64,000 nt of DNA from Blastocladiella emersonii ATCC 22665 (lineage: Eukaryota; Fungi; Blastocladiomycota), in the NCBI GenBank assembly GCA_025594325.1, contig JANHCV010000013.1, positions 868,001 to 932,000 of the forward strand, given 5' to 3'. Positions 10,075 to 62,031 of the stretch are shown here, piece by piece; within the stretch, counting starts at the first letter, position 1, and every line of letters starts with the position of its first letter. The translations under genes were made by a program, and so were the position numbers. The notes below the pieces were generated by a model. It did no database searches, was not told the origin of the DNA, and saw only the letters and a program-made list of their open reading frames with translations.

Positions 10075-10276
10075 CGACGTTGCGATGACTCTCTTTTCTA
10101 TGTATTTTGAGTATTGATCCTCAAAACTTGTTGTTCCACAATTGCGGATATTACCCGGCCCGTCAGTGATGAACGCGTTGCGCCACACTTGGCTCTTGAT
10201 AGGAGTGACAGGGATGACGTGGAGCCCAAAATCGAAGGCGGACCGCCGCCGGAGCTCCACCTCCCCCGCCCACGCA

Positions 10277-13200: not shown

Positions 13201-13484
13201 CGATTCTTGCTGACTACGGCCGCGTACTTCTCGACCAGCGATCGGCCGTGCGCGAGCTGCCGTGGGAGGCGCTTCTGCCCATGTGCCAGATCCCCCTTTA
13301 CGCCATGCCCAGTAGCGCCGCCGCCGTTTCCGATTCGGACCCGCGTGTCGACGCGCCGACTTACGTGGCGCTGCGCAAGGTCATGAAGCGGGTCCTCGTC
13401 CTGCCCGCGTATCCAGTCGGATGCGGTCAAGGCATCGACACGCTCGGCCCGCTGTACCAGGAGTTCATGCTCTTGGGCATCTGA
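10277..13484 (+). CDS. DUF4470-family large protein, copy 1 (one frameshift near the 3' end)
   Basis: Motifs LLCGCGDLAQVARTV, FTLNDWESEVLARNFLILH, GRLWYSHFLD and DVINTD..DCGLL. In-frame 60-nt intron 11802-11861. An extra T in the T6 run at 13146-13151 shifts the last ~110 codons (real mutation or sequencing error). Confidence 0.8.
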
Positions 13485-24900: not shown

Positions 24901-26310
24901 CACAGCGGGAGGTTACACGTCGGCTGCGAGAAGAGTGGTCAAGTCGAGCGCACGCGCGCAATCAGCATCGTAACAGTGACTAAAACGCGATAGCGCACCT
25001 TGTCGCGACTTGTTCAACATCCGTGTGCGCCGACGAAAACAAGTTCTTCACGGACATAGCGAAGCGCATGCATGCCACGCGAACTGGCATAAACATTACT
25101 CGCGTGCCACTCTTTTCTTCACCTGACCATACACACGTGTTTGACATGCCCGGACGGGGATTGTGCGGAAAGTGCGCGATAAACTGAACTCAACGCGACG
25201 CCGCGCTTGAACAGGCTCTGATGACGCGCAGGTCATGAGCGTGGGGTTGCAGTCGAATACGAGTAAGCAAGCGGTACTCATATCACGAAGGACGTCATAA
25301 GTATATGTTGCACTAGGTCTAGAGGCAATGGCCGTTACATGGGGATGTATTGGAGGAGACCATGTAAGCGGTGCGCAACTGCTCGCGTCAAGCTGCTGCG
25401 GCGGAACGCTTCAGCTCTTCGACACGTGTCAGCGATTACCTTTTTCTGACTCGCTCAGTTAATGGCGACGCCCAAGTGCGGGTTCCAGCCGAAGCGCCCA
25501 GCTGCCGGTGCGTCACAACTGGATAGTGAACGCGTGGTGCGCTCGGCAGGACGTGGACATTGTCGGTGAGAGAACCGTTGCCGTGCGATTCGACTGGATG
25601 TGCGCGAGTGAAGATAGCAGTTCCAGGCGGTAAAGTGATTCGAGGATTTTGTCTAGGGAATTGACCCAAGTGTCGTATAGGAAACGTGCGACGCGGCAAA
25701 GTTGACACGGCGAACGTGGTTCACGCGGATCGAGCGATCTAGGATTACGACAAGAAACTCGACTAGGGGCAGTTAAATGTCGTGTTGAGACGTAGCAGGC
25801 ACTTGGTCAGCGTCCAGGCTCAATTGAGCGAGTGAGACGTAGGATAATCGCGTACCTGCGCGCATGAATCACACTGCATTCCCCGTCGAAAGAAATCCAG
25901 AATTTCCCCTTCGAAACGTGTACACAGTACCGCAGATCAATTTCAACACGCTTGCGAAGGATCGTCCAGACCAAGAATAGGCGAGCGCAGGTCCAGCAAG
26001 CGCCGCAAGGAAGTGATTTTACAAGCGACGACGCTTGTGGGTGGGACACGCGCACGAAGGGAAGTTGAGTGCGTGCTCGCGAACAGCCTCGAGGAGGAGG
26101 CGGCACGCACGTCATGGCAGCCGTTAAAAACGCATAATGCAAGAAGTCTAAGGGTGGGGAAAGCTTCATGGAGTGCGTTGGGGAGAGCGTGAACGCGGCG
26201 CGAGACCGTTGGCGTCAAGGCGGCGGCAGCGGAATCAGCCGAGTTCATCAACACGTGATGAAAAATCCTGGCTGAAACGTGGCGCTGCGCGTCCGCGCAC
26301 ACTCATGAGA
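21950..26310 (-). repeat. Three degenerate tandem copies of an unidentified gene-like unit (starts near 22850, 24050 and 26300)
   Basis: Shared blocks: TTCATCAACACGTGAT (~22790, ~23967, ~26244), GAAGTCTAAGGG (~22699, ~23865, ~26143), and a ~110-bp block at ~22036, ~23247 and ~24560. Minus-strand translations HHVLMN...LRLLA and APP...DL.PH...RS.RA.AVK.CAPPARVL are conserved but broken by stops and frameshifts. Confidence 0.7.
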
Positions 26311-26420
26311 CCACCAGCAAACTCGGTCCGCTCTGTATGAGTGACCGAGTCGCAAGCGGAACACGAAGCTCACAACTTCAATGTATCAAAAAAAGTCCCG
26401 CTGCAAGCGTGGAATCACTT

Positions 26421-27687
26421 TCAAATGTCCGTGCCCTGAGGCTGCCGCTCTTCGAGCCCCGACTCGCGCCACCACTGCGCAATGCGACGGAACCCAAGCT
26501 CCTCGGAAAACTCCTGCGCGCATCGAACGTGGTGGCGTCCTAGCTGAAGCGAGACACCCGAGTCGAGCCACCACCAGAGTCGCGCGAGGACCTCCTCCTC
26601 GTCATCGCCTTCTTCAACAATGGACCATCCAAGCGGGCAGTAGGTTTGCGAGGAACCAGTCAAGGACCGAGATCCGATTCCACTTGCTCGCGTAGCCGAT
26701 CATGTAGGCCCAGAAACCCGATCGGCCCCAGTCGTTGTCGGCGAAGTGGTCGTAGTCAAAGTCGTACTCGCCCGTGTCAGCGTTGCTCTGGATCGAGTCC
26801 ACGCCGTAGAGTTCGCTCTCGTACTTCGGCTCGGAAACGTAATCAAGGAGGTCTTCTTCGACATTTTGGCGGATCCAGTCGATCAACGCAACCTGCTCCA
26901 GTTCAATGGCAGACTTGATATGCTCGGTCCAGTCCGCCGTCTCCAGCTCCATCTCCCACGGTAGCCAGTCGCCGCACTCGTCGAGCACCTTGGCGCTGCC
27001 GTGTTGGAATGCGAGATTGACGAGATAAGTCTTGAAGTCGCCATGGAGGCACGCAGGAAAGTCGATCGACTCGCAGCTGCCGCAATGACGGATGAGCCAC
27101 TTGAGCACGTCCGGATCGTCGCGCTTGATGGCGTCCTCGAACAAGTCGTCTGAGAAATCGAGTTCGAGCTCGGCCGCCTCCCACCAATCGAGCACATCAA
27201 TGAGACCCGCCTTTGCGGGTCGATTGATAGCCGCCTCGGTGTAATCGTTGTCCAAGCCATGGTCGAACAGCCACTGTAAGACGCCGATCTGGCCGTGCGC
27301 CGAAGCGAGATCCATGTACAGATAGTTGGACGGAACTTTGCGATCCGACTTGAGCAACTCATCAAGCAGGTCGACTCGGCCAGTGACGCACAGGCATGCA
27401 AAGTAGAAGGACGCTTCCGTGAGATCAGACAGCGGTAGGGATCGGCGGCGTTCAATCAGCTCGTCCAGGACGTCAATATGCCCAGAGTCGAGTGCTTCCC
27501 AGAAGCGCTTGTGAAGGGAGTGGGCGAAGACGATGCGGCGGAGACTCGATAGACCGGGGACGACGCGAAGGAGCGGGACGGGGTCAATGCCCGTCACGTC
27601 GCTCAGGACGACGAAAGCGAGGATCTGCTCAATGAGCTCGGCCGGTAAAAGTTGCATGGAGTGTGATTTGTTCATTTCGTGCTCCAT
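26421..27687 (-). pseudogene. F-box-like plus ankyrin-like repeat paralog of 8749-10074, frameshifted near the 3' end
   Basis: MQLLPAELIEQIL, YMDLASAHGQIGVLQWL and IKRDDPDVLKWL align by eye with the 8749 protein. The C-terminal GDDEEEVLARL...ELGFRRIAQWWRESG lies in another frame after ~26620. Confidence 0.75.
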
Positions 27688-28021
27688 GGCAGCCAGGTCG
27701 TTGGGTGGGGAGCTGCAGCATCGATCGACGACGCGTCAGAGCAAGTGGCGCTCGCTCTCGCGGGCGCGCAACGAGGCAGCCGACCCGCCCCGCTCGCTCA
27801 AACGCCCTGCTTCCAACCTCCCGGGAGCGATCGTGCGCTGGATCGACAGCGAGAGACACGACAACTCGACGCGTTTCGATATCGCGTGATCTATGCGAGG
27901 GCTGCGGTGGAGGAGGCGCTGCAAGCAACGGCGCGGCCAAGCGCCACCTTCGCGGCTGCCCAACAGCTCTGCTCCCCCTGCAGTGCGACAGCCATGAAAA
28001 CGAATGAAGTAACTTGGCGCA

Positions 28022-31000
28022 ATGAGTAAGTCACCCATGTTCTCGCCGCCTCAGACGAGCGCAACGCTTCTCATCGCCGACGGCCTGGAACGCTTCCCGC
28101 CCTTCCGCGACTCGTATGCCGAGGACCTGTTTCTCTACCACGATGCCACGATTGCCGACCGCGGGCTCAGCGCACTCTCATGTGGCTTCCACGACCTGCG
28201 ATCGGTCGCCTTCACGCTCGCCGAGGCCGAGCGCAAGCGCTCCCGTGCCGCCATGTCGTTCGTGCTCAACGACCTGCGCCCCGAACGGATTGCTCGCGCG
28301 CTTATGGTTCTTCATGCTCTCAACCAGTCTTCGCTTGATCGCAACACACTCGACCGCTTCATCGGCCAGCTCTGGTTTTCGGAGCTGCTTGAGGCCGATG
28401 CGCTTGCTTTCTGGATCACGCAGATGCGTGATTGTATCGACTTCGACTGGCTCTCGTCTACTTCCAAAGTCCGTGTCCTCAACGACCACACGCTCAAAGG
28501 CATTCGCGTCTGCTGGGAGCAGTGGCTCGATCGGAGCGAGGGCCCGCCCTTGTCGACCGAACGTGCCGCCAAGGCGCGCGACGGCCTCATGCGCTCACCG
28601 TTGTCGGACTACCCTTCGCTCGCCGATGACGAGGAGTTCGATGCGGGCAGCGATTGGGACGCCACGACCGTCGGCGAGGTCGAGACGCGACGTGCCGCTT
28701 CCGCCGTCTTTATGGATAGCGAGGAGGTGGTCGGACGGTCCAAGGTCGCACGCACGCGCTGCGAGCTCGACCGGCTTGTCGCGCACGGAACCGTTTTTCA
28801 CGCAGCGACCCGCGACGCTTCGCTCGCTGTTGTCAACCCGACCTTCACTGGCTTCGAAGCCGACTTGCCAGGTCCAAGTTCGGCGGTGCTGATAACTGGC
28901 TTCTTTGTCGATCCGAGCCGCGACAGTCTCGAGCGAGCGATGCTGGATCAGCTCCAGGACTGGCTTCGCGCACTCGAGCGTGTCATTGCTCCCGCTTCGC
29001 GCCATCGCATCTCGTTCATTCTTGGACATGCTGTGGCTGTTCTGGAACAGCTCGCGGCCGACCCCCAGCAGCGCTTCGATATCATCGACACGTCGACGCT
29101 CATCGACTCGTGCGGCCTGCTCAACCTCGTCCTGCACGCCTCGTTCATCCTCAAGTACAACCACCCGACCGCGGGCGACAAATCGATTCTGCGCGCGGCC
29201 TCGAACAAACACGTCGCGCCGGCTTCGACCATCGATCAATTCGTCATTGAGTCAACGAATGTCTTGCCCGAATGGTTCCCGGTGCTTTTCAGCTTGACGC
29301 TTTACGGCCACACCAACCCCGCGAACGATCCTTGGCTTGCCCGCGTTCAGCCCTTTGCCCCTGCCGCTCACGAGTCGTCGCGCACCATGCCTTACCGCCG
29401 CCTCACCTTTTGTAAGGCAGCGACGCCCACGTTGACAGTGTCGCTTCGGAATGCGGTCGGGTTCGTTGATGTGATCCGCCATATCATCGAGCGCCAGAAT
29501 CGCGCGCCCGCTTCGAGCAAGTACTCGCACAGTACGCTAGCTTTGATTGTTCTCGCGCATCTTCCTGAGCTCACCTCCGTCCCGTCCCAAATGTAGCTGG
29601 TACTTTTCCGACGCCTTCTTTCATCTTCAAACTGCTTGGCTACGGTTTTGCCGCGCGCAAGTTCGTCTTCGGCGCCGCCGACCCGTGCACGAAGCTTCCG
29701 TGGTCCGACTTTGGTCTTGGTGAGCCTTGGCTTTCGCAGCTCGAGCTGGGCGCCGCGCGCGAGAATCTCTCGGAGCGGTCCCTCTACGCACGCATCTACG
29801 GCTTCTCGAGCGGGCCCCGTGACGACCTGCCGCGCGCGCACCTCGTCCAGGCGACGTTTACGCTTCTCCATCCTGAATCCCTGCCGCCCGCTTCCGCCAT
29901 CCACGTTCTCGTCGAGTCTGGCGGCACGACCGCGCAGTACCACAGCCTGACCACCGCTTTCGACCGCGCGAACGGCGTCGTCCACGTCGGCTGGTACATG
30001 GCGCCGTACGACGAGTGCGTGCCCGGGACCTGGGTCTCGCTGCACGCCGTCCCCGCGCTCCTGCCCCGCGACGCGTTCCCCTTCACGAAACCCGTTCTTA
30101 TCAGCGACCGCGTCCGCCTGCGCAGCTTGGTCAACGTGAAGAACGACACGGAGAAATTCGTCACCGTCACGCACGTGCAGGTGACCGACCTGCAGGCCGG
30201 GCTCCGCGGCGTCATGGCGTCCGCCGCCGCTGCCGCGATGGCGCAGCCGCGCGATCCGGCGTGGTACCTTCCCGTCCTGCACGCGACCGAGACGTTCGAC
30301 GAAATACGAGTGTACTACGAGCCGCACTTCCGCGGCCAGAAACTCAAGCTTGAAATTGTGCCCGAGGCCGAGCTCGCGCAGTACGGCGGCGCGATTGCCG
30401 TGCGCGTCAACGGCAAGGTCCAGACGGCGACGCTTTGGGGGCCGGGTCGCGTCACCGAGATCCGCTCGTTCCCGCACATGATTATCGTGTTTGTCGAGCG
30501 CATTCCGCTTGCCGTCGTGCCCAAGCTTGGGGTTCCGCCGCTCGTGCCGCGGTTCGCGTTGCCTTCGGCGGGCGCGAATACTGCGCTCGTGTCCTCGCGC
30601 TTCTTCGACGCGGCTGCTTTCCAGCGGTTCCGCGAGCTGTCACTGGCTGCCGAGTGGGATGCGAATTCCTCCAACGCGTCGAACCGTCCCCGCAGCGACA
30701 CTGGCGCCGCGCTCATGCAATTCTTCGAGCAGGTCTACGCGGCGGCCCAAATCGGTGGCTACGACACGTCCATCACCGTTTTGGCCAACGCCAAAGGCCT
30801 GGACGATCGACTTGGAATGATTGTCATCGACGGCACCCTTGTGGCCTCGCCCCAGGGCAAGTGCTTTGGCGTCACGCCGCTCGTCACTGCGAGCTTCCAC
30901 CAGTTTACGCCGCTTCGCGCGGGCTTCACGAAGCGGTCCTCGGCCAAAACCGGCGGCAAGGACAACCGCCCTCCCTTGAGCGAGGATGTCATCCAGATCA

Positions 31001-31188
31001 AGTGGCCGCACGATGATGTGAGCGCGCTTCGCGAGTACCTTGACTTCTGCGAGACCGCGCTTGTGAAGACGGACGAGACTGACGCCCTCATGGCGCCGAC
31101 GCTTTTCGTTGACGGGCAGCTCAGGCGCGGGCTGCTCGTGCCGCCGTATTTGATTGATTCTGTCGGCGGTGATGCGACTGAGGAATAG
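28022..31188 (+). CDS. DUF4470-family large protein, copy 2 (appears intact, ~1033 aa)
   Basis: Motifs LSCGFHDLRSV, FVLNDLRPERIARALMVLH, FIGQLWFSELL and FDIIDTSTLIDSCGLLNLV. Intron 29532-29596 (GTACGC...ATGTAG) joins the exons into one frame. Confidence 0.85.
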
Positions 31189-31280
31189 ATTTTGTTCAGT
31201 TCTTCGTATTGTTCATCGTAACGAAGCCTTGTCGCTTGACTCTCCGCGCCCTGTCCAAAAATCATGCTCATTGAAAGGGA

Positions 31281-31364
31281 GAGGTGCCGCGTCAAGAGTG
31301 GGCGAAAAGTGAGGTGCCGCTTCAAAAGTGGGCGAAAGATGAGGTGCTGTGTAAAGAGTGGGCG
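31281..31364 (+). repeat. 30-bp tandem repeat, 3 degenerate copies
   Basis: GAGGTGCCGC.TCAA.AGTGGGCGAAA..T units start at 31281, 31311 and 31341. Confidence 0.85.
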
Positions 31365-31369
31365 GCGCG

Positions 31370-31760
31370 GTGGCCCAGAAGCTGTTGCGTTCGAACACGT
31401 CGACACGCTCTCGCCGCGCAAGTTTTAGCTCGGAACGTCTTGACGCAAATTGCAGCAAAATTACACGCGGGCGGCGGGGGTCGCGGTGAACACGGACGAG
31501 TTTACGGTGATCTTCAAGGAGGGTCGTTTACCACCGGCGTGCTTCGTGATGCTCGCGTCGCTGGTGTGTGGCGCAACTACGCGTTGCGCCACTCATGTGA
31601 TCCCCCGTGTGGCGATCAACGGCGCGCGACAGCTCGGGGTTCGCAATGTAAGGAGGCGATAACCACGTGCGGTGCGCACCATACGCGGACGGTGTTCACT
31701 CCTGCGGTGCAGCGGTGCGGTGTGGTGCGGTGCAACGTTTGGAGGCGCTGGGTGCAAACG
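31370..31760 (+). pseudogene. Possible decayed SET-domain fragment
   Basis: Frame of ORF 31284 reads GRVYGDL...RDARVAGVWRNYALRHSCDPPC...KEAITT...RCGVVRC, resembling SET EY.GE / DA...GN..RF.NHSC.PNC / GEE.T / post-SET C.CG...C with many substitutions. Confidence 0.3.
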
Positions 31761-31818
31761 AGGCTTCAACCCCCGCTTCCGCTCCCGACGCTTGTTGACG
31801 TCAACACCATCTGTAACC

Positions 31819-33418
31819 ATGAAACTACACACAAGAGACGACGCAACGCCAAACCGATCGGCGGAATGGGGCAACATGCACGGCAACCGCAACGGCTGCG
31901 ATTCGAACATAGCAGCTGATCCAGAGGACTTCAAGGCGGCGCCGCTTTCTACTATACTGCGTCGCCAGTCCGACCAGTGTTCCTCTCTCGAGCAATCGAA
32001 TCACCCGTGTGACGCTGATGCCTGGAAGGACTTGGGCAATCTGCTGCTCCAGGGCTGCTTCGGCCTTCCCGCCCGATCAAAGTCGTCCGTCCTTTTCGTC
32101 TGCTCTCCCAAAAACGACGGAGCTGCTCCTTTGTCCAAGTTTTTGCGACCGGAGTGCCTGTGTGACTCTGGCGCGCCCTGGACCCAGCACCTTCAAACCG
32201 AGACCGGTTTCCTTCAAGGTTGTCTGTTGACGGATTCCAAGTCATCGCCTACTCTCAAGGCGTGCGGCTGGACGTCCAGCTTCAGCCAGACTTGCACCAC
32301 GCCGTTGAACGACAACTTTGCGCTGTTCACGGTTGCTCGCAATCTCTTGGCCAAGGTCACCCCCAACACCGCTTCTCCGTCCAAAGTCAGTTCCTCGTTG
32401 TCTTCGGACGAAGCTTCAAAAGCTTCAAGCTCGAGATCGGGGGCAGTTTTTCCTTCCGGTCCAACTGCGACTCTGCCCGCTATCGCGGCTTCGACGACGG
32501 CTTCAGACGGCGCTTCAAGCATCCCGCTTGTCTCGACCTTGGCTGTTGTGGGCGGCGCTCTCGGATTCATTGCGGTATGCGTCTCACGCCTGCTCCACGA
32601 TCGAGTCAACTAACGTTTAACGTCTTCGGTAGCTCGTTGGTCTCGTCCTTGCTGTTCGGGCACGCCGAGACAAGTCTCACCTCGATGCCTCCCACGTCTC
32701 AAAGCCTCTCATGGTTGAGTCCACGCGCGGGGCGCCGACTGACAACCACGTTGCCGTCAACATTTCCGCGCCTCCGGTCCTCGCGCCTTTGATGGCTTCC
32801 CCTACCCTCTCCACCAAGTCGCTCCCGCCGCCGACGTACTTCTCGGTCCTCCCTCTTGCGAGTATCTTTGCACCCGCCTCTGCCGACACGAAGCAGTCGT
32901 CTTCTGGCGACCTGCTTGACGAATGCTCGCTTCAAACCCTCGCCGATGAGTGGGAGTCGCTCTTCATGCAGCTCGAGCATGCCGCAGCGCGCTCGCTTGC
33001 CCCGACCGCGGCGCCGCCCAACGTGCGGTCGGCCGACAAAGCCCTGCTGCTCATGTCCGAGTTCCGCTCGCGCCGCGCCCGCCACGTTGCCGAGCTGGCG
33101 ACCGCGATTTGGACGGACCTCGAGACCCAGTCGAGCTGTGCAGTTATTGACCGAGAACTTTCCGAGATTGCCGACGCGATGCGCCAGGTCCTCACCCGGC
33201 TGCACGCGCGCTACCCGTCCATCGCGCTGATTCGGCTCGGATCCGGCGAGCCGCTATGCGAGCTTCCGGCGACAGCGTACAACGTGTACTTTGACGCGAC
33301 CGAGTCGACTTCCGCCCAAGCAGCCGCGAAGCAGGTCGTCGTCGGCTGCGTTTACCCCGGCTGGTTCGACGCGCGCGCTGGGCAGGTCGTTATCGCGCCC
33401 CGCGTCGTTGTCGAGTAG
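31819..33418 (+). CDS. Single-pass receptor-like membrane protein: Cys-rich ectodomain, Ser-rich stalk, TM helix, cytoplasmic helical region and GrpE-like beta tail
   Basis: Intron 32575-32632 joins LVSTLAVVGGALGFIA to LVGLVLAVRARR (TM helix plus basic stop-transfer). Ends VVVGCVYPGWFDARAGQVVIAPRVVVE*. Start and signal peptide are uncertain. Confidence 0.6.
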
Positions 33419-33705
33419 CGGCGCGCATTTTTTCGAATTTTGTTTTGTTCGCCCATGTTCAATTTTAGTTACATTAGTTTGCTCCAAAGCATGTTGTTCA
33501 GTTACTACTCAAAGTCGATGAGCAGGCTGACGCGCTGCGCCACTCACGTGCGTTTGAGTAACGCGTCGGAGCCCAAGCAGGAAAATTGCCACCATGCCGC
33601 CGACCCGAAAACGCGATGAATAACAACCTCGAGCTTAAATTTCAAAAGCACGGCACTGGAGGACGTAATAACGAGGCATTTGTATATCGGCTTACCAGCA
33701 CTTCG

Positions 33706-36700
33706 TCAGCTCCCCTTTGCCATGAACGCGTTGAGCGCTGGCCCGAGGATGTCCACCCCGCTACCACACACGGGGTACACGGGAGTGAGGAGAACGCGCT
33801 TGAGGATCGGCCGCAGCGACGTGTAAAGCGCAGCGTCGAACCGCGGATCCTCCTCGGGCACGGGTCCCTTGATTGGGAACATGTCAGCGGCAGAGATCGC
33901 GGGGAAAGCGTTGGTCGAGAGCTCGTGAACGGACATGCGGCCAGCAATCGCTTGCGCGCACTGTTTGATCACATCCAGCCGGGAGTTGATATGGATCACA
34001 GTGGTCGAGTTGCGGGTCGAACATGGCCACGGTGCACTCGAGGCCGGGCGTCGGGATCATACCCGGTCCAGCCGAAGGAGCATGACGGCGCGGTCAAAAA
34101 AAATGAGAGCGCGACAGTCGCCCGCGTCATCGCGAACCGAGACCGCCTGGTTCCAGCTCGCAAACGCATCAAAGACTTGTCGGGTGGCCTCAACAAGGCC
34201 AGCAACTTCGAGCTCGACTTGTTTTCCGTGGACCGAATGACCCAGAATTTCAAGTGCATTCGCATCACGGCGCCGCGCATCAGCGCCCGCCGGGTGAAAG
34301 GTGTTGAGCATGTCCGCAGCCGTGCAGCTGGCCGCGCGGATCGAGTGCTGCATAATCGGTTGTTGAAAGCGAGAGGAAAGCGGCGCCCGGCTGGGGGCGG
34401 AACGGGTATGAACGAAGTGTCGGCGAGGGCGCACACAATACGTTCGAGTGTAAGCTTGACGCGTCGTTGCTTGCGGGCGACATGGATGTTCGTCACGCGA
34501 ACAGGCGCCGTGACGTGCATCGTCTGCGGGGCGCCGTTGATGAGCAGCGTCGCTCCGCCGGCACCGTCATCGAGCTCGGTTGACCCAATAACGATTTTGG
34601 GCTCGTCGGGCTTCGGAAGTGTGAATCTGGTCCTCGCGGCAGGCACGTTGGATGGAATTCGCATGACGATCTCGATTTGGTCCACGGCTTCGGCAACATT
34701 CTCAACAGGCAGCACCCAAGCACGCTGAATCTGCTGAAAGTAATCAAGCGGAGGCAGACTCAACGGAGGCATGGGACACGGGAAGCGGATGGCAGAGGAA
34801 AGCGGCACAAGTTTCCCTCCAAGGAGCGAGCGCTGGGGCGTTTCATCGTACCTCCGAAGTTTCTCGCGGTACACACCAACCATTGTGGTGTCGGGTGGCA
34901 ATGACTGCAAGCGCGCAACCGAGAGATCCGCACTGACGCGCAAGCTCGGAGGATGACCGTAAACGGGTTCAACGCGAAGGCTCTCGAGCCGGATAGTCAC
35001 ATCGCCGCTAACAAGCTCGAAGCCCAAGTAATCTCGATCCACTAAGGCGCCGTCATCGTCGGCGGGAACTACAAGCTCGACGCAAGAATAGCGACCCTTT
35101 TCGCGCCTCGAATAAAACCCATACTTGTCCAAAGCAGCTGAAATCTCGCCTGATCCGGTGATTGGACACCTGACACGCTCCACGAGACCCATAACGAAGT
35201 CGGTGAGCCCAGTCAACTTGCCATCGACGGGCAGGAAACAAGTCTTTGGATCAGTTGTTGTAACGCGGCTGGAGTCCATGGCGAATCGGATAAGTTTGGG
35301 AAGCAGGCTTGCCGTCGTAAAACTTTGGACTATACGGACAAACGTGAGCGGATCGCATAGGACCCAGTGGATCTGCATGACACACTTGATGTGCTCGAGT
35401 AGGAGGTGTAAAGAATGCATGTCACAAGGGTGTTAGTGAGAAAGGGCGATTTGTCAAGCATCGTCGGCACCGTTGGCTGACGCAGCTTGACGAACGTGAG
35501 ATGGCGCGTTTGGATGGGCATCGAGATGGTCGAGGCTCCAGGCCGACGATTGATACCAGGTATGTGAGCTCTTGGAAGTTGACATCTCGGCGAGTGCGAC
35601 GCCAAAAAGGCCGGGAAAGCCGCGTGTGGGAGACCCGACTTGAGCTTAAGGTAAGTATCAAGGCCGCCACCATAGTCGATTCCGGCCGAGGACGTCGAGG
35701 AGGTGAACAAACGCGCGCGGTCTGGGTGTTCGTCGCGCTCGCGAAGGAGAGGGGACCCGTGAACGAGGACGTTGATCAGTCCACAAGAATCGGTGAGATT
35801 GTTGGTATCGACACCGTCAAACCGCATGATCGGGTACAGTTTCATCAATTCCATGGTGACGATAGCATGGCCGTAGATAAACATGGCGCAGAAGCGTGGG
35901 TTGCTGTCAGTAACACTGCGGTAGAGCTCGGTGACCCAGTCGCCAAGTTCTGCCTGCATGGCGGCTTCGGGAAGCCCGCGTCCAAGAAGCACGTCAAAAG
36001 GGTCCGATGGCAGCGTGTTCGGTTCGACAGCATAGTATGACTCGTTGTCGATCGAGAGCAGGAGAAACGCGGGATTGACAACGAGAGCTGACTCCTATGT
36101 GAAGGCGCTCGACTCGGCAAGGCGTTCGATTGAGCAAGCAGTGCGCGCGGGGTCGCCGCCCTTGAGCACTCCACGGTACTGTGAGTTAAGCCGGTCCATG
36201 AACGAGACCACCGAGCTCGAGGCACTCGAGCAGAAAGTCGGGTTCGCGGCCGAAAACGACGCGTTGTACCGAGCGCGCTCCTCGAGCAACTTGTCGACCG
36301 ACCAGTCCACTTCGAGCCAGGCACACCAGCATCGGCGCAGCTCATCGAGAGTCTCAAAGTTAAAAAACGGAGAACGGCGACTTTTCTGAGACGTTCATCC
36401 ACTCCTTTACTAAACAGGCGCGCAACTGGCCGTTCCAAATCTCTCGGACATCGGGATCAAGCAGTGGAGAATACCAAAGCTGGCCAATGTAGCGTGTGAG
36501 CGACGCCAGGTCGAGCTCGTCGTGCGATGTGAAAGCGATTGCGTGAAGAATGACAAGGTTTCGCGCAAGCACCTCGGGCTGCCAATCGTTTAGCATGAAC
36601 ACGAGCCTCGCCGCCACACCCCTCTCTGCAGCTTCGTAAACGGTCCGGGCGACCTCGGCAAGATCGCCGCAGCCGCACAGCAAAGCGCTCAACAGGGATT

Positions 36701-36884
36701 GAGTGGACGACCCGTGCGAGCGAAACAGGTCGCGTGGCTGTACGTGGCGGAACGGGCGAAAGCGGTTGACGCGGTTCCCACGATACAGCGTGCGGCACGT
36801 CACCAGCGGAAGTGCCGGCCCCGCGCAGTTGTCGGTCATATTAGCAAGTTCGGACGTAATGCCGCCAGTTGCGGGTAGATTCAT
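33706..36884 (-). pseudogene. DUF4470-family copy 3, pseudogene
   Basis: LLCGCGDLAEVARTV and FMLNDWQPEVLARN. Conserved intron 35330-35385. Frameshift at the T6 run near 36360, a nonsense TAG where copy 4 has CAG (~36095), and further frameshifts in the 3' half. Confidence 0.85.
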
Positions 36885-36900
36885 GTATTCAGGCGTGCAT

Positions 36901-39832
36901 TCATTGGGACACCGAGAGGTGGAGAGGGAGAGGGAGGGCCACGGCAATCCGAGACCGGCGATGATTCAAGGGGAGTGGAGCGAAAGGAGAGAACGTCAAG
37001 GCCATGGTGCACTCGAGACCAGGCGTCGGGATCATGCCTGGTCCAGCGGAAGGCAGCAGGACAGCGCGGTCAAGGAAAATGAGAGCGCAGCAGTCGCCCG
37101 CTTCAGAGCGAATCAAAACCGCGCGTTTTCCGCATAAAAACGCGTCAAAGAGCTGCTGAATGACTTTGACCAGGTCACGAAGCTCTTGCTTGACCAGAAA
37201 TTCAGCAGCCGGACGCAAGGCTCTGACCAAGTCAATGCCCGCACAGCGAGCTGCGAATAGCGAGTGCTGCATGATCGAGCTCCAAAGTGGCATGGGGAAG
37301 CGGCGACCGGCCCGAGGCGTCGATATCATCAGCGGACAGTCTGCTTGAACATAAAGTGCGCGTTCAAGAATGAGAGTGACGCGGCCCTCCTTGCGGGCGA
37401 TCCGGATGTCGGTCACGCGGACGGGAGCGGTGACGCGCATAGTTTGGGCGACCCCGTTGATGAGAATGATCGCTTGGCCGAGTCCGAAGTTGACCTTGGT
37501 GATGTCTCGGGTCGGGGAGCAAGAAGTAGTCGGCGGAAGGGTAAACTTGGTCTTCGCGGCGGAGACGCCTGGAGGGATGCGCAAGACGAGCTCGATCTGG
37601 TCCAACTTTTCGGCCACGTACTCGACGGGTAGCCCCAATTCGCGCTGGCCAGTTGGACGACAAGTTTGCTGAAGCGGCTGACGCGGCTGAGCACAAGGGT
37701 AATGTGAGACGCATGCAGCGGAAAGCGGGAGCAGTTTCCCTCCGAGAAGCGTATGCTTGACCTGGCCGTCATGTTGTCGCAGGAGCTGCTCGCGGTATAC
37801 GCCAAGCGTCGTTTCTGGTGGCAAGGATTTGAACACGGGTCGCGAAAGCTTTGCCGAGACGCAGATGCGCGGAGGGTGGCCGTATACCGGCTGGACGCAA
37901 AGATCTTCCAGTCTTAGGATCCCGTTGGGACGGGAAATAACGAGAACAAGATGCTCCGGCTGCAGAGGGGTGTCGTCACCAGCAGGGACCACGAGCTCGA
38001 TATGTAAAGACGAAGCCGATTCTGGGAGAGCAAAAAACCTGTAGCTTTCCATGGCGTTACAAATTTCAGCCTCGGCCCTCGGAAGTAGAGTGCACTTTTC
38101 CAAGGTATGAACGAGGAAGCGAGTGATTCCGGTGAGAAGTTGAGAATCGGTGCGTGGGGCGCATGGTATGGGATCTGTCGTCCGGACACGGCCAGAATCA
38201 ATGGCAAATCGAAGAAACTTCATTATCAGACTCGCAGTTGTAAATCTGGGAACTGTGTGAAATACGTTAGCAATTTAACCCAAGACCGAGATTCAATCAA
38301 CTAAAGCGCACCTGTAGCGCTTGGGAGGGAGGAACGGTGAGTGATGCATGTCACAAGCGCGTCGGAGAGAAACGGAGACTTGTCCAGAAACGTCGGCGAG
38401 GTCGGCTGAGTCAGCTTGACGAAGTTCAAGTAGCGCGTCGGGTTGATGTCGAGGTGATCGAGACCCCAAGCGGAGCCTTGATACCAAGTCGGCGAACGCT
38501 GTGGGTTCGACTTTTCGGCGAGGACGACGCCAAAGAGGGCCGGGAACGCCGCGTGCGGGAGGCCCGACATACGTTGAAGATACCGGTCAAGATCGCCCGA
38601 CGCTATATCAGTCGCTGCCTTCGAATAAGTGAGCAGCCGCGCAGGCTCCGAGTGCATGTCGGTAGCCCGAAGCAGAGGTGACCCATGGACAAGGATGTTG
38701 ATCAGCCCACACGAATCGGCGAGGTTATTCGTGTCAACGATGTCAAATTGTGAGGAAGGACGGGTTGCGATTCGTTCCATGTGCGCAATCGCGTGACCGT
38801 GAGCGAAAGCGAAAATCAATCTTGGCTCAGCTGGAGTGAGGCCGTCACGGAGCGTCGAAACCCAATCGCCGAGCTCGGCCAGCATCGCCGACTCAGGAAG
38901 TCCACGACCAAGAAGCAAGTCAAAGGCATCCGACGGCAGCGTGTTCGGGTCGACGGCGTAGTACAGCTCGTTGTCGATAGAGAGTAGGAGAAACGTGGGA
39001 TTCACAACAACGGTCGACTCCTGCGTGAATGCACTCGAATCGGCAAGACGCTCGATTGAACATCGGCAAGACGCTCGATTGAACATGCCGTGCGCGCCGA
39101 TTGGGCGCCCGTAAGTACACCTCGATACTGTGCCTCGACACGGTTCATGGAAGCCGTCGTGGTTGAGGTGCTCGGACTGGCTGTTGTGTCTGCAGTGGAG
39201 CAAGCTTGGCGGTACCGAGCCCGATGCTCGAGCAGCGCGTCGACAGACCAATCCATGTCGAGCCATGCGCTCCAGATGCGGCGCACCTCGTACCGGGTCG
39301 ACTTGCTTGCTACGCAGAGTCGTAAGCCGGGTGCGGAGTCCAACCAATCTTTTTCGATGCAAGCGCGCATATGGCCGTTCCAGAACTCGCGAACCTTGGG
39401 ATCGAGAAAGTGCGAGTACCAGAGCTGCCCAACATTGCGGGTCAGGGTCGGCAAATCGACCTCGTCAGCCGGCGCGAAAGCGATTGCGTGGAGAATTAGC
39501 ATATTACGCGCGAGAACTTCGGGTTGCCAGTCATTTAGAGTGAAGACAAGTTTTTGCGGCATTCCCCGCGCTGCGGCCTCGCACACGGTCCGAGCGACCT
39601 CGGCCAAGTCGCCGCAACCGCACACGAGTGTGTGCAGGTAGACCTGCTTGAGCGACCCGGTCAACAGAAAGAGGTCCCGCGGCGGGTGGTTACGAAACGG
39701 TCGAAAGCGGTTGATGCGATTGCCGCGGTACTGCGTGCGGCACGTCACGAGCGTCGGACTCGGCGCCTTTGGTTTGTCGACCAGACTAGTCGCCGAGTCG
39801 GATCTATTGCCGCCAGTCACGGGTGGTTTCAT
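36901..39832 (-). pseudogene. DUF4470-family copy 4, pseudogene, 3'-truncated
   Basis: LVCGCGDLAEVARTV. A 23-bp tandem duplication at 39039-39084 shifts the frame. Intron 38253-38311. Homology stops after GLECTMA (~37000), directly against the upstream region of copy 3. Confidence 0.85.
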
Positions 39833-40186
39833 GGTTCTAAACGTGCATTCATGGGTTGGGAGGGAGAGTGCGAAAGTCGCGACGCGTTCGGTTCGAAGCG
39901 TGGGAACCGAGGTCGCGCGCGTTGCGCCACTCACGTGATTGCCCGACGCGTCTCGCGGCTTGTCTCCCCGCGTCCCTCTCGCCGCGACTGAACGCCACAC
40001 GCGCGGCGACCTGTATCCCTCCATCGCTGTGCTGACCCAGTGGTCGCCGCGCTTGGACACGGCAACGCTGGTTCATTTCACTAGAAACTTTCTCCTGTTA
40101 CGCGCCTAATTAGAGTACACTATTTCTTCGCGCTAGGTTTCATAAATAATGAATGAAATCACTTGAATAGAGTATATTTGCGACGC

Positions 40187-41677
40187 TTACTCTTTGTTGG
40201 CGTGCTCCATGATGGTCTTGTATAGCTCCTTGCGCATGACGAAAACGGCTCCACCCTTGCACCCGTTGCGCAAGTACCCGCTGACCCCACCCTTGCCCGT
40301 CGGCAGTGACATACGTTCTGGGGTCGGGACAAAGTAGTTGGGGTTGGCGTGGAACGTGGTGGCACCGTCCCGGACGACAAAAAGCCCCTCGATGTTCCGA
40401 GGCTGGATCCTGTCCAGGATACTGACCTCAAACTCGTGCGCGTACCGGCTTCCAACGCGCAGCAGCTTGGACGACACGTTCAAATCCAAGCCGTTGATGG
40501 CGCGGGCGCGGAGCACAGCGTAATCACTAGGATTCGTGCCCGAGGCGCCAAACCGGCGCGCAACGGACATCTTGTGCGAGGTGCTCACGTAGCAGCTCTC
40601 CATGACGATCCCGCTCTGGTGCATAAAGGCGTCGGCATCCACACGCCCACGCGGAGGGACGCCTGAGTTGAAGAGCCGGTCCGGTGCGCCGTCCTGCAAG
40701 TAGATCTGGTCACCGCGGTAAACGACGTCTTGACCGCCAGTCAGGGCTTCATGAGGGAACGGGTTGTTGTTGTACGTCGCGTCAGGAAGCTCGTCGACGG
40801 GTGTCGGGACATCGGTGAGCTTGGACTCGGCGTACTTGGAAATGATTTCCTGCGCCTTGAACGCTTCCTCGGACGAGACAAGACCTTCTCCCGCGCGGAA
40901 GTCCTCGAGGGTCTTGTAGGCCTTTTTGACGAGCCGCTTCTGGACAAGCTTACCGGCCAGTTGACCAGCCAGGCCATCGAATACGGGCGTAACGATAGCG
41001 CCAATGAGGCCGTCGAGGACCGCGTCAGGCGAGTCGTTCTTGACCACCGCGTCCCACGCCGCGATCTGCCCTGAGGGCGTGAACTCGCCGTTGATGGCGG
41101 ACTCGACTCCAGTGATAGCACCATCCATGGCCGCTCCCGCCGCCGTCCCGCCAGCGATGGCACCGACCGGCCCGCCAGCAAAGAAGCCGGCCACCCCGCC
41201 CGCCATGACGCCCGCGGCCCGCATCCCGCTGCGCATCGCGCGGTCGTCCGCTTCGCGGCAGCCCGCGGCGTACGAGATGCACCCCTTGACGTGGGCGACG
41301 ACAGGGATCGACTCGAGCGTGCTCTCGGCCACCTCCAAGGCTAACCCGGCAGTAGTTGAGCCCGACTTGGCCGTTGCCTCGGCGCACTTGACCACGGTCT
41401 TGTTGAGCGCATCAATTTGGCCAAGCGTCACGCCGGCGGCGACCGATACTGCGGCTGTAGCGACGGCGGTGCCCGCGGTTTCAGCGACGTGGCGCACGAT
41501 CGTCTGCTCGGCCTTCTTGGCGGTGAACCTGGCGCAACCTTCCACAGCATCGTTGAGCTCCTTGACCTGGCCAAACGTCACGTCGGCAGTGAAGGCGGTT
41601 CCCGCCGTGGCGATGGCACCGCCGATAGTGGAAATTTCGTTGCCCGTGGCGATGTTTTGTGACAGGGAGAGGTGCAT
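40187..41677 (-). CDS. Polymorphic-toxin-like protein: N-terminal repeats and glycine-zipper hydrophobic region, C-terminal cholera/pertussis-type (R-S-E) ADP-ribosyltransferase domain
   Basis: Intact ORF. VVYRGD (R at ~40715), YVSTS (~40577-40585), YAHEFEVS (ExE at ~40427-40435) and closing ANPNY. Central GVMAGGVAGFFAGGPVGAIAGGTAAGAAMD. The first ATG (41677) is tentative; an upstream exon is possible. Confidence 0.8.
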   Translation of the reverse strand: MHLSLSQNIATGNEISTIGGAIATAGTAFTADVTFGQVKELNDAVEGCARFTAKKAEQTIVRHVAETAGTAVATAAVSVAAGVTLGQIDALNKTVVKCAEATAKSGSTTAGLALEVAESTLESIPVVAHVKGCISYAAGCREADDRAMRSGMRAAGVMAGGVAGFFAGGPVGAIAGGTAAGAAMDGAITGVESAINGEFTPSGQIAAWDAVVKNDSPDAVLDGLIGAIVTPVFDGLAGQLAGKLVQKRLVKKAYKTLEDFRAGEGLVSSEEAFKAQEIISKYAESKLTDVPTPVDELPDATYNNNPFPHEALTGGQDVVYRGDQIYLQDGAPDRLFNSGVPPRGRVDADAFMHQSGIVMESCYVSTSHKMSVARRFGASGTNPSDYAVLRARAINGLDLNVSSKLLRVGSRYAHEFEVSILDRIQPRNIEGLFVVRDGATTFHANPNYFVPTPERMSLPTGKGGVSGYLRNGCKGGAVFVMRKELYKTIMEHANKE

Positions 41678-42074
41678 GAACGAGTGGTAGGACTCGGCCA
41701 AGGTGGCTACTTAACATACGGAGTCGCTTCAACACCTCAACAGTAGAGCGTAGCGCATCCGACGAGCTACAGGCAAGTAAATCCCAAGCGTGCCAAGAAT
41801 TACTGTCTAGCTTCGCTGCTCCTTGGGTTTCACTGTTCATTTCATTTCCACTGTCAAACGAGGTCAAACTAAAAACATTAAGGAAGCTTCGCAACTTCCC
41901 TGGAAAACCAAACAACTTTCCAGCTGTCAGGGCGAACAGTCATCCGATACGGCTGCATCACCCATGCGAGCAGCGTGCTCGCGTCACGATAGATCAGAGC
42001 AGCGTGGCAGATTCTTACGCGTGGATTAGCAGCGGGTGACCTGCCGTGCTCCCGCGCGTTTGCCCGGAAGCCGA

Positions 42075-42226: not shown

Positions 42227-45200
42227 TCACGCCTCGCCGCGAGCGAGCGCCGCCCGCGCGGCGACCTGCATCTCCTTCATGGCCGCGAGATCCCACGCGT
42301 CGCCCCCGCGCTCGGCCATAGCGAGGACGCGGGCCATGTTGGCGAGATCGACGAGCTCGACGCCGTCCTCCTCCTCGCCACCCACATCCTCGTCGCGGTG
42401 CTGCGCGCGCTCAAACTCGTCCGCGACCCGCTCAGCGTGGTCGACGACGTCCGCAGGCACGCCCGCCATGCGCGCGACGTTCATGCCGTGGGACCGTGGA
42501 CTCGCGCCCGGCGCGAGCGTGTACAGGAACGTGACCTGCTTGCTGCTGGCGTCTTCGAGGACGGCCATGTGGACGTTGTTGACGGGTCCCGCGGTGAACT
42601 CGGTGGTGAGTCCGTGGTAGTGCGTGGCGAAGACGACGCACGGGCGGACGCAAGTCGCGAGGTGGTGCAGCGTCGCAAACGCGATCGCGTGGCCGTCAAA
42701 CGTGGCGGTCCCGCGGCCGAGCTCGTCCATGAGCACGAGCGACCGCGGCGTCGCGACGCGCAGGATGCGCGCGGCCTCGTGCATCTCGACCATGAGCGTC
42801 GACATGCCCTGGACGACGGCGTCGCGGGCGCCGATGCGCGTGTGGACGGCGTCGAAGGGCGCGAGCGCGCACCGCGCCGCGGGGACGGGCGACCCGAGCT
42901 GCGCGAGGACCGCGAGCAGCGCGACCGTGCGCTGCGCCGTCGACTTGCCGCCCATGTTGGACCCGGTCAGGAGAAGCGACCGCGGCGTGCGGGCGTGGCC
43001 GAGCGCGACCGTCGTCGGGATGAACCACGGCTCGCGCGCAAAGCACGGGTGGCGCGCGTCGACGAGGTCGATCCACGCCCCGCTGCTGGTGTCGTCAGCG
43101 ATCTCGGGCGTGCAATCGAACCCGTTATCGTCCGCGGCGACCGCGAGCCCAGCGAGCACGTCGATCTCGGCGACGACACCCGCGAGCGCACGCCACGTGG
43201 CAGCGTGCTCGGCGAACTGCGCGAACACGGCGCGCGCCGCGGTATCGAGGTGCTGCGCGCGCACCTCCTTGTGCTCCTCGAGCTCCTCGTTCATCTTGGC
43301 GACCTCGGGCGCCATGTACCGCGCAACGGCTTTTGTCGCGGACACGCGGCGCCACGCGGCGGGCACCGTGGAGGTCGAGACGGGCACCTCGATCGTGTTC
43401 TTGTCCTTGCCGACGTCCTTGAACACGGCCTTGGCGCGCAGCTGCTGGCGCGCCGTGGTGAGGAACGTGCTGAGCCGGTCCTCGACGTCGCGCACCTGCT
43501 CGCACGCCGCGTCGTATTCGGCGACGACGCCGGGGCGCGGCTCGAGGTGGCCCGAGGCCGCGGCCGCGGCCGCATCGAACGCCGTCTCGAACCGCGCCAG
43601 CGTCGTGTCGGCGGCATCGATCACGGCCGAGTTGCCGACGAGCGCCGCGACACGCGCGGACGCGAGCGCGCCCGAGTCCACGAGCGCCTGGACCTCGCGC
43701 ACCGCGGCGACGGCGGCGCGGAGCCCCGCAAGCGTGGTGCAAAAGTCCTTGACCTTGCACCGGGCGACGACGACGGCGCGCGCGATACACCGATCGAGGT
43801 CCGGCACCCCGCGCATCGCGTTCCGCACCGAATCCCGATCCCCCGAATTCGCGCGCCACGCAGCAATCGCCTCCTGCCGCTCGCGGATCTTGCCCGCGTC
43901 GCGGAGCGGGTGGCACACCCAGACGCGCAGAAGGCGTCGGCCCATGGGCGTCGCGCACCGGTCGAGCGCTGGAAGCAACGCGCGCTCGCCGTCGAGGACG
44001 CCGAGGTTCGCGAGCGCGGCGCCGTCGAGCGCGAGGTACCCGGCGTCGCGTACGGGGTCCCACGCGGCCGCGGTCGCGCCCGCCAGGATGTCGTCGCGCT
44101 TGAGCCGCTGCAGGTACGCGGCGAGCCCGCCGAGCGCCTGCGCGGCGAGGTCGTCGCAGTCGGTCACGACCGCCGGTGCGCCCGCGGGCCAGATACCCGA
44201 CCACGCCGCGCGCGCGGTATCGGCGGCGGGGAACGAGGGCAGCGTCGCCCACTCGGCGTCGGGGCACACGGCTTTCGCGAGCCGCGTCGAGGCCGCCGCG
44301 AGCCCGCCGCGTGGGACCACGAGCTCGCGCGGGCGCACCTGCATCAGCAGGGTTTCGAGGGCGGACCGCGCCGGGTCGTCGGTGAACGAGGCGAGGTGCA
44401 GGGCGCCGGTGCTGGCGTCGAGGAAGGCGGCGGCGACGGCGCGTTCGCCGTTTTCGGAGGTCTCGGATTCGAGCAGGGCCATGCAGTACGTGGCGGCGTC
44501 GGAGGCGAGGAAGGCCGGGTCGACGAGCGTGCCCGAGGTGAGCACGGCCGTCAGCTCGCGGCGCATCACCTTGTCCTTTTTCGCGGTGCCCTTCTCGCGC
44601 AGCGCCTTGCCCGCGGCGGTCTCGGCCTGCTCGACCTTGGCCACCTTGTACCCGCGCGCGACGAACTTGATGGCCCAGTCCTCGAAGGCGGTCATCGGGA
44701 AGCCGGCCATCCGCATCGCACCGCGGCCGTTATCCGCGACACGCATGTCGAACTCGCGCTGGGCAATATCTGCGTCCCGTTCGTACAGCTCAGCGAACTT
44801 GCCCTTTTGGTATGCCAATATGGTGTCGAAGTACTGCGACTTGACCTCCCAGTAGTGGCGCTCAAAGTCGGAGAACTTGGCCCACGCCTCCTTGGGCACG
44901 TACAGCGACGACGGGTCGTAGTCGGGCTCGCCGGGCCGGCGGCCGTCGGCGTCGCGGATGTCCTCGAGCCACGCGTAGTTGTTCTTGTTGGTCTCGGCGA
45001 ACTTGGCGGTGCGCGCGTCGCGGCGCGCCGCGGACGTCGTGGTCGGCGTCGCCGCGACGCTGCCGCTACCCGAAAGCAGCGACGGCGTGCGCAGCGTCGC
45101 CTTGGGCGTCGGCGTGCCGCGGCGGCTTGTGCTCGGGGTGGTGGTGCGGCTCGGGGTACGGCTCGGCGTGCGCGACGCTATGTTTCGGGACGGGAGTGTC

Positions 45201-45862
45201 AGCGAGCGATCGGGCAAGTGGAGGGCGTGGCGAAAGCGTACACTTGGGCGTCATATCCTCATCCTCGTCGTCGTCGTGGGCCGCGTCGACCATCATAGCG
45301 TCGTCGTCTTCCGCATCGTGCGCCGACACGGCCGGCGGGCGGTAGTCATCGTCGTCGCCGTCGTCGTCCGAGTCGATGACGCGGGCGCGCTTTCGAGCGC
45401 TCGGCGTGGTTGGCTACAGGCTCGAAGGGTTAGTGCGTCTTCTGTGGCTCGCTCGCGCGATCGACCAAAGTGAGACCGTACCGTGGCACTCGCCGCGCGC
45501 TTGGCCGGGACCGACGGCGTCGTCGCAGCTGGCTTCCGAGCCGCTGGCGCCAGCGAGGGAGCCGGGCTCGCGGCGGGGACAGGTGCCGGAGCGGGCGTCG
45601 GGGTTGACTGAGACGGCACCGCCGCCGCGGAAGCAGCCTGCGACGCCGAGACCGACGGCTGCGAGGCCGAGACCGACGGCTGCGACGCCGAAGCCGACGA
45701 CGACGGCTGCGACGCAGCACTAGCCTGCGACGGCGTGGGCGTCTTGCGGCCAAAGAACTTGAACAGCGACGACTGCACGCGCTTGTCGGTGGGCGTGCCG
45801 AGGCCGAGGGGCTTCTTGGCGGATCCGCCGCCCGGCGTCTTAGAGCCCGGTGCGGACGACAT
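42227..45862 (-). CDS. MSH6: DNA mismatch repair protein MSH6 (MutS family)
   Basis: RRPGEPDYDPSSLYVP, KGKFAELYE (F-x-E mismatch motif), GSNMGGKST Walker A, DELGRGTATFDG and SHGMNVARMAG. Two short canonical introns near 45415-45480 and 45177-45240. Confidence 0.95.
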
Positions 45863-61900: not shown

Positions 61901-62031
61901 ATACTGGCATCGTGGTAGAGGTAAATGTCGGCGGCGTGCGAGTCGCGGAACGGATCAAAGTGCTCCGCTGGGTCCAAGTGAAGAACCGTCGCGCTTGCCT
62001 GCGTAGGCAGGAAACGTTGCGCTGAAGCCAT
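58919..62031 (-). pseudogene. DUF4470-family copy 5 (copy-2 subtype), frameshifted
   Basis: LLCGFNDLRSV, FTLNDLRAEPIARTLLILH, FIGQLWFSEH and FDVIETSTLADRCG. Intron 60360-60450. Frameshifts near 61610 and 59390. Confidence 0.85.

Follow-up and report, generated by a model that had tools for sequence, protein, structure and literature searches.

A candidate two-part ADP-ribosyltransferase effector gene in Blastocladiella emersonii, built on a eukaryotic module with exchanged tails

The gene and its reading frame

The window analysed here is a 64,000-nucleotide stretch of contig JANHCV010000013.1, from the Blastocladiella emersonii ATCC 22665 assembly (PMC9730499), and its subject is one minus-strand gene that encodes a protein designated P0001. 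Judged from its sequence, the gene is intact and specifies two domains, an N-terminal helical module and a C-terminal ADP-ribosyltransferase (ART) tail. Its parts, with residues numbered as in P0001, are as follows.

40187..41701, minus strand: whole open frame, 504 codons from TTG plus stop (open reading frame tool)
40187..41677, minus strand: public single-exon gene model, P0001, 496 amino acids plus stop (NCBI GCA_025594325.1, JANHCV010000013.1)
41501..41629, minus strand: repeat 1 of the N-terminal module, residues 17-59, Ala/Gly/Thr-rich, predicted helical
41351..41479, minus strand: repeat 2 of the N-terminal module, residues 67-109
40943..41326, minus strand: conserved core of the N-terminal module, residues 118-245, predicted local distance difference test (pLDDT) score of ~90 or more
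41126..41218, minus strand: glycine zipper, residues 154-184, 31 uncharged residues with a central G-G-P
40742..40942, minus strand: junction or linker, residues 246-312, conserved only among ART-tailed relatives
40328..40741, minus strand: ART domain, residues 313-450, with R321, S365-T-S367 and E415-x-E417
40190..40327, minus strand: C-terminal extension, residues 451-496, with a terminal helix, not conserved in relatives

An earlier note on this DNA had placed an uninterrupted open reading frame (ORF) at exactly 40187..41701 on the minus strand and had called it fungal. Both statements hold: the frame gives 504 amino acids from TTG and, from its first ATG at 41677, the 496 residues of P0001, and B. 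emersonii belongs to the phylum Blastocladiomycota of the kingdom Fungi. The contig is 1.38 Mb long and encodes the exact P0001 sequence once. The length of an ORF is no evidence of a gene here, since antisense ORFs of up to 966 amino acids occur in the ~70%-GC flanks; those of 966 and 743 amino acids lie opposite the upstream MSH6-type gene (42398..45298 on the plus strand, and others opposite 42227..45217). The gene is instead judged to be real because homology spans its whole length, P0001 being 45% identical throughout to a 471-amino acid protein of the liverwort Riccia fluitans (E 2e-102). In addition, of the 25 columns with a conservation of 90% or more across 109 relatives, P0001 keeps 24.

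The start of the protein departs from that of its family. Complete N-termini are available for 113 relatives whose module begins at their own N-terminus; 61 of these start with M-G, and 55 carry an N-myristoylation pattern. The window copy keeps the Gly of the family and the residues that follow it, and there is no Met codon before that Gly; the frame extends 11 codons upstream of the family start to the annotated ATG, and position 2 is His. The combination that defines N-myristoylation (initiator Met, Gly2, and a small residue at position 6) is thus absent from P0001, and several other module relatives also lack Gly2. An upstream exon supplying the family start was considered and rejected: the sequence ahead of the conserved Gly codon contains nothing like an acceptor site, and the related genes of Riccia (CM092408.1), the oomycete Pythium oligandrum and the coral Desmophyllum (MU827356.1), like that of P0001, consist of a single exon. 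By hydropathy, no signal-peptide-like hydrophobic core was found in the first 40 residues.

The C-terminal ADP-ribosyltransferase domain

Residues R321, S365-T-S367 and E415-F-E417 align with the catalytic residues of the relatives, TreX, ScARP and Scabin, and the N-P-N-Y at the end of the domain corresponds in the alignment to the C-terminal motif that ScARP and Scabin share. A profile was made from the alignment of P0001 with the nine relatives that share its tail (10 sequences), and its matches in the PDB were as follows.

TreX (8s2m_B): E 8.7e-10
ScARP (5zj4): E 6.9e-8
Scabin: E 8e-6
Mosquitocidal toxin (MTX): E 1.8e-4
Rhs toxin tail and pierisin-1: E ~3e-3
Cholera and heat-labile toxin A: E 0.02-0.2

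An AlphaFold2 model of residues 300-504 of the frame, calculated from the ART-tailed alignment rows only, had a pLDDT of 67 and a predicted template modelling score of 0.62; the ART part of the whole-protein model, based on a 110-row alignment, had a pLDDT of ~30. In Foldseek the ART model matched 76 PDB chains at E<=1e-3, the top matches all being R-S-E ARTs, and it paired with TreX/TreTu, heat-labile toxin, cholera toxin, pertussis S1, ScARP, Scabin, pierisin and MTX at a probability of 1.00 and E-values of 4e-6 to 1e-4. No match of P0001 to the Pfam profiles Enterotoxin_a (at E<=1) or Pertussis_S1 was found. The profile and the model, then, place the tail among the ARTs of the R-S-E clade, nearest to TreX, ScARP and Scabin (the pierisin group) and not to cholera or pertussis toxin. 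The ART tail with intact R, S-T-S and E-x-E that the earlier note had seen is thereby upheld by profile, model and aligned residues. Its description of the signature as cholera/pertussis-like stands for the fold but not for the nearest relatives by sequence, and of the three comparisons that it had proposed, Scabin was recovered by both profile and fold, whereas Enterotoxin_a and Pertussis_S1 were recovered by fold only.

Six of the nine tail-sharing relatives have Q-x-E and two have E-x-E, with the ninth truncated before the motif; the subfamily is therefore mostly Q-x-E on these sequences, and E-x-E, found in 3 of 9, is a minority state. The Q-x-E of the DNA-targeting pierisin subgroup is lacking in the window copy, which has E-x-E. 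The latter goes with arginine-specific ARTs such as TreX, where E100 and E102 are active-site residues, and Q-x-E with the guanine-specific ScARP, Scabin and pierisin, and substrates vary widely within the TreX/Scabin family (PMC11606950). The Q-x-E/E-x-E switch within one small subfamily offers a natural series on ART target choice, while the ART itself is an additional member of a known ART type.

The ART tail is likely to have a bacterial horizontal origin, at the level of the subfamily, because the nearest known ARTs are bacterial. Word-indexed protein searches with P0001 residues 290-496 and with a three-sequence ART alignment returned only relatives already known and no bacterial neighbour. 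B. emersonii is the only named fungus among the module matches, and the closest full-length relative is from a plant.

The N-terminal module

The two copies of the internal repeat, each of 43 residues, align with a score of 90, which was reached in none of 2000 shuffles (26.6 +/- 4.8). The core that follows contains a P-V-V-x-H-x-K-G motif, the glycine zipper and a terminal T-P-V-x-D-G-L-x-G motif; the first of these motifs and the zipper are the best conserved parts of the module family. The zipper is flanked by Arg and Asp, with no charged residue among its 31. The two-copy repeat, the P-V-V-x-H-x-K-G motif and the zipper had all been picked out in the earlier note, correctly. The module is predicted to be all-helical, with pLDDT >90 over residues 140-290 of the whole-protein model.

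Neither the fold nor the sequence profile of the module found a counterpart in the PDB (best fold match E 0.5), nor did the fold among viral models (best E 0.06), and it had no Pfam, NCBIfam or PADLOC match and no recognised secretion or trafficking domain. Sub-threshold Pfam matches did occur over the zipper, to C19orf12-like (PF20721) in 26 of 110 relatives and to microcin V and DUF456 in 10 of 110 each; all were confined to the zipper and none reached a curated cut-off, the best match to PF20721 having an E-value of 0.0029 against a cut-off of 30 bits for that family. Homology to C19orf12 was considered and left unproven, as the likeness is sub-threshold and involves ~50 residues of low-complexity zipper. 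It may reflect a remote relationship to zipper proteins of organelle membranes, or mere composition.

A module family with exchanged tails

A full scan over 1.84 billion representative proteins yielded 473 matches to the module family at E<=1e-3, 224 at E<=1e-10 and 39 at E<=1e-30. Nearly all of the 473 cover the N-terminal half only, the common core being residues ~118-245 of P0001. Every named match is eukaryotic, and none is named as bacterial. The named carriers are the liverwort Riccia fluitans, the oomycetes Pythium oligandrum and Globisporangium polare, the corals Desmophyllum pertusum and Pocillopora damicornis, the rotifer Adineta ricciae, the nematodes Caenorhabditis briggsae and Pristionchus fissidentatus, and the ostracod Darwinula stevensoni, together with B. 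emersonii; the module is also found in MMETSP and Tara transcripts. The Riccia protein is the closest full-length relative and has the same architecture as P0001. All module relatives are either unnamed or annotated as hypothetical, and for none is a Pfam domain precomputed over the module.

The module is constant and the tail is not. Across the 109 relatives the share of the commonest residue drops from ~0.56 to ~0.2 after the T-P-V-x-D-G-L-x-G motif (residues ~231-245), and the 103 tails of at least 80 amino acids fell into 50 BLAST groups, 37 of them singletons. The module of P0001 is 46-59% identical to that of its relatives whatever tail they carry, whereas its tail shares no more than 35% identity with that of any relative. 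Pfam recognised a Scabin-like domain on 7-8 tails, Exo_endo_phos on two, and Endonuclea_NS_2, LRAT, U-box, RING and KH on one each; most tails have no recognised Pfam domain. As far as sequences can tell, a constant head with exchanged tails is the layout of a polymorphic toxin, as the earlier note had said, and its statement that the module occurs in other eukaryotes with different tails proved accurate.

This family of one head and many swapped tails appears to be undescribed: a literature search found the module nowhere described, a 2016 Crinkler survey that lists helical headers lying outside this comparison. Bacterial toxin domains are known to have been put to use by eukaryotes in isolated cases (pierisin, CIDE, the tails of Crinklers). 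What is new here is one conserved head, with no Pfam family, PDB match or name, joined to dozens of unrelated tails, and its presence in animals, a plant, oomycetes, protists and a fungus suggests a general effector scaffold that has gone unrecognised.

The base composition of module genes follows that of each host, which argues against contamination. For P0001, contamination with bacterial DNA and a recent transfer of the entire gene from a bacterium were both rejected: the module is restricted to eukaryotes among the named matches, the contig is 1.38 Mb long with fungal genes on both sides, and the base composition is host-like.

Some features of individual relatives may be added. The Pristionchus gene occupies 8.7 kb for 693 amino acids and so contains introns. 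The long-form relatives are single-exon genes, whereas a short-form gene from a nematode has introns. The long-form genes of the liverwort and the coral Desmophyllum have no other called gene within 6-8 kb on most sides, and single-exon, isolated genes of this kind are unusual for intron-rich hosts. One ART-tailed relative, in Logan SRR15309551_148 (1741..3178), consists of three abutting ORFs of 78, 305 and 96 amino acids, i.e., it has undergone two frame changes, and may be either a decayed copy or an assembly error.

Comparison with known systems

TreX, ScARP and Scabin (PF22596) have in common with P0001 the R, the S-T-S, a [Q/E]-x-E, a C-terminal N-P-x-Y and a compact domain of ~130-160 amino acids. 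They differ in being bacterial, secreted or delivered by type VI secretion systems (T6SS) or Rhs proteins, and paired with immunity proteins. P0001, by contrast, comes from a eukaryote, joins its ART to an unrelated helical module and lies near no immunity gene. Thioredoxin is a further requirement of TreX (PMC11606950). Pierisin-1 of butterflies and MTX belong to the same ART subgroup, and pierisin is the classic example of a eukaryote having acquired this type of ART by lateral transfer (PMC3482391). However, both have C-terminal ricin-type lectin repeats for cell entry and signal or secretion routes, whereas the partner of the ART in P0001 is N-terminal, helical and lectin-free; pierisin, moreover, has Q-x-E where P0001 has E-x-E. 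Cholera toxin A1, heat-labile enterotoxin A and pertussis S1 share the fold and the catalytic triad (Foldseek probability 1.00, E ~1e-5), but the A chains of the first two match the tail of P0001 only weakly by profile (E 0.02-0.2), and P0001 lacks the A2/B-subunit system and ARF-binding elements of that group.

With respect to architecture, the bacterial polymorphic toxins (Rhs, CdiA, WXG) resemble the module family in their constant N-terminal part and sharply bounded, variable enzymatic tail, and the tails of both include ARTs and non-specific nucleases. P0001 nevertheless has neither a polymorphic-toxin secretion-system domain nor Rhs/YD-type repeats, no immunity gene adjoins it, and the window contains no spare tail cassettes. 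The Crinkler (CRN/CR) effectors of oomycetes, chytrids and other eukaryotes likewise join a header to swapped enzymatic tails; they occur in non-pathogens too, have no true signal peptide and are seen as conflict effectors (PMC5289972; PMC12957317). Their header is ubiquitin-like with an LxLFLAK motif, in contrast to the predicted all-helical, zipper-bearing module of P0001, and no match to a CRN-related Pfam domain was found in P0001 or its relatives. In the ART-linked Crinkler AACRNL, the ART is diphtheria-toxin-like, whereas that of P0001 is Scabin-like. The likeness to glycine-zipper proteins (C19orf12-like, microcin V, DUF456) is sub-threshold over the ~50 residues of the zipper and is not evidence of homology.

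Interpretation and alternatives

The reading that we favour, at a probability of about 0.5, is that P0001 is a two-part effector in which a membrane-held module carries an arginine-type ART at a cytosolic membrane face, with a role in conflict or cell death. Its front half (residues 12-245), comprising the two Ala/Gly/Thr-rich repeats and a long helical pair with the glycine zipper, would hold the protein on a membrane or insert into it, helped in most relatives by a putative N-terminal myristoyl anchor; membrane binding or entry is suggested by the lipidation motif in the relatives, the zipper and the helices. Its back half, a predicted mono-ADP-ribosyltransferase of the TreX/ScARP/Scabin type with NAD-binding and catalytic residues intact, would move ADP-ribose from NAD+ to a target, most likely a protein arginine because the window copy has E-x-E. 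The cytosolic face is favoured over secretion through the endoplasmic reticulum in view of the lack of a signal peptide, the family M-G start and the liverwort, coral and nematode carriers.

The module would be the unchanging element of a family that extends across eukaryotes and has replaced its tails again and again, and this repeated exchange is why the family is read as conflict or cell-death effectors, a eukaryotic counterpart of polymorphic toxins, with P0001 as the probable member that is armed with an ART in B. emersonii. The same role is suggested by the tails of toxin type, by the patchy distribution and by two precedents: bacterial toxin domains, including pierisin-type ARTs, have been adopted by eukaryotes as apoptosis or defence effectors (PMC3482391), and Crinkler-type effectors combine constant heads with enzymatic tails (PMC5289972). 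The membrane-inserting delivery module, the part in antagonism or cell death and the horizontal acquisition that the earlier note had proposed all remain inferences. B. emersonii is a model for zoospore biology, and the gene, with its predicted intact enzyme, is a candidate conflict or cell-death gene in it.

We put forward more tentatively, as a broader view that is somewhat doubtful, that the family constitutes an undescribed, eukaryote-wide set of lipid-anchored, membrane-inserting carriers with interchangeable warheads, which would serve cell-autonomous immunity or regulated cell death and would spread patchily among distantly related eukaryotes. The warheads would include the Scabin/TreX-type ART, non-specific nucleases, an LRAT-type lipid enzyme and E3 ligases, the whole being an analogue of the bacterial polymorphic toxins, and the B. 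emersonii gene would be its first fungal ART-armed member.

Several observations weigh against the favoured effector. P0001 is not expected to be lipidated if the annotated ATG is used, and the zipper is only moderately hydrophobic (19-residue Kyte-Doolittle mean ~1.0-1.2); no structural or sequence match of the module points to its proposed membrane function. P0001 alone scored E 0.0064 and 16.8 bits against the Scabin-like Pfam family PF22596, short of the cut-off of 27, even though the match spans profile positions 8-130 of 130 and 8 of the 110 relatives do match the family (best E 2.3e-8). Single-sequence searches of P0001 against PDB chains and NCBIfam gave nothing useful, and the ART assignment thus depends on a 10-sequence profile and a medium-confidence model. 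Tails of the U-box, RING and KH kinds do not count as toxins, strictly speaking. Within 10 kb, called genes gave no match to an ADP-ribosylhydrolase, macrodomain or NADAR and no immunity-type gene was seen, in agreement with the earlier note, which had found no adjacent immunity gene. Finally, a single contig is the sole record of the exact protein, no second assembly contains it, and expression of the gene is inferred.

Two alternatives keep the enzyme but give it a different destination or substrate. P0001 might be an exported toxin, its helical module being a self-inserting translocation or pore device, in the manner of helical toxin translocation domains, that carries the ART into competitors, prey or hosts; this corresponds to the delivery module of the earlier note. 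The constant head, variable enzymatic tail and sharp junction are indeed found in bacterial polymorphic toxins and in Crinkler effectors alike, TreX (an Rhs/T6SS toxin) and Scabin, to which the ART is most closely related, are delivered toxins, the family is present in oomycetes including the mycoparasite P. oligandrum, and the zipper has a weak likeness to microcin V and the class IIc bacteriocins. However, the start of P0001 is unlike a signal peptide, the M-G start of the family predicts cytosolic lipidation, and the liverwort, corals, nematodes, rotifers and ostracod do not inject effectors; with no pore-former or translocation domain matched in the PDB and no adjacent immunity gene, we regard export as unlikely. 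Alternatively, the enzyme might modify guanine in DNA or RNA, as do pierisin, ScARP and Scabin. ScARP and Scabin are among its best sequence and fold matches and share the C-terminal N-P-x-Y, Q-x-E is the state both of DNA-targeting members and of 6/9 ART-tailed relatives, and the wide variation of substrates in the TreX/Scabin family (PMC11606950) leaves room for such a target. Nevertheless, the window copy has E-x-E, like the protein-arginine modifiers TreX and MTX, TreX is its best sequence match, and a membrane-held enzyme would be poorly placed to reach nuclear DNA, so a nucleic-acid target seems improbable.

The other two deny the gene a part in conflict, or any present function at all. 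It could be a decaying relic, a former family member that is no longer expressed and whose frame is a recent leftover in a degenerating, lower-GC patch of a gene family. The family initiator and lipidation motif are not intact in the window copy, two frame-broken gene copies lie directly downstream, the G+C content at third codon positions is 0.79 compared with 0.88-0.92 in the housekeeping neighbours, and a second assembly with the protein is wanting. Against this, 504 codons are free of stops, the conserved columns (24/25) and all catalytic residues are retained, the public annotation uses an in-frame ATG 11 codons upstream, and the absence of Gly2 is shared by several relatives; decay is therefore, in our judgement, quite improbable. 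Endogenous mono-ARTs of the R-S-E clade exist in eukaryotes, and P0001 might be one of them, a resident membrane-bound enzyme whose reversible modification of one of the cell's own proteins would serve, for instance, zoospore signalling and play no part in conflict. A regulatory function would agree with tails of the U-box, RING and KH kinds and with the weak, sub-threshold likeness of the zipper to C19orf12-like organelle-membrane proteins. A housekeeping regulator would not be expected, however, to have an extremely patchy distribution, with one named fungus among the matches, or fast-evolving, swapped tails that include nucleases, and the nearest ART relatives are toxins and no reversing hydrolase lies nearby; we give this possibility the least credence.

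Genomic surroundings

The neighbours of the ART gene, and the related copies of one of them, lie at the following positions.

42227..45862, minus strand: upstream neighbour, intact annotated MSH6-type MutS gene, 1167 amino acids
36997..39823, minus strand: downstream copy of the DUF4470 family, unannotated, with two frame changes
33937..36875, minus strand: second, tandem DUF4470-family copy, unannotated, with three frame changes
10142..13213 and 28022..31188, plus strand: intact annotated DUF4470 paralogues
about 59200..62030 and about 63000..64000, minus strand: further DUF4470 copies

The gene had been described as surrounded by pseudogenes. That is correct on the downstream side, where the two frame-broken DUF4470 copies lie, but not upstream, where the MSH6-type gene is intact and is followed by Tam41 and then by a RAI16-like gene. 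A tblastn search with every fetched relative as query detected neither a further copy of the gene nor a spare tail or family fragment in the window. The GC content steps from ~70% in the flanks to 57-62% over 24000..42000 and back again, and the ART gene is situated at the boundary, beside MSH6. This lower-GC patch coincides with DUF4470 copies; overall, the DUF4470 family has at least six copies in the window and fills its lower-GC parts. One of the DUF4470 frame changes coincides with a short perfect tandem duplication (Tandem Repeats Finder). Elsewhere, a 138-bp tandem repeat of 2.4 copies with 70% matches is located at 16683..17008, in a 73%-GC stretch.

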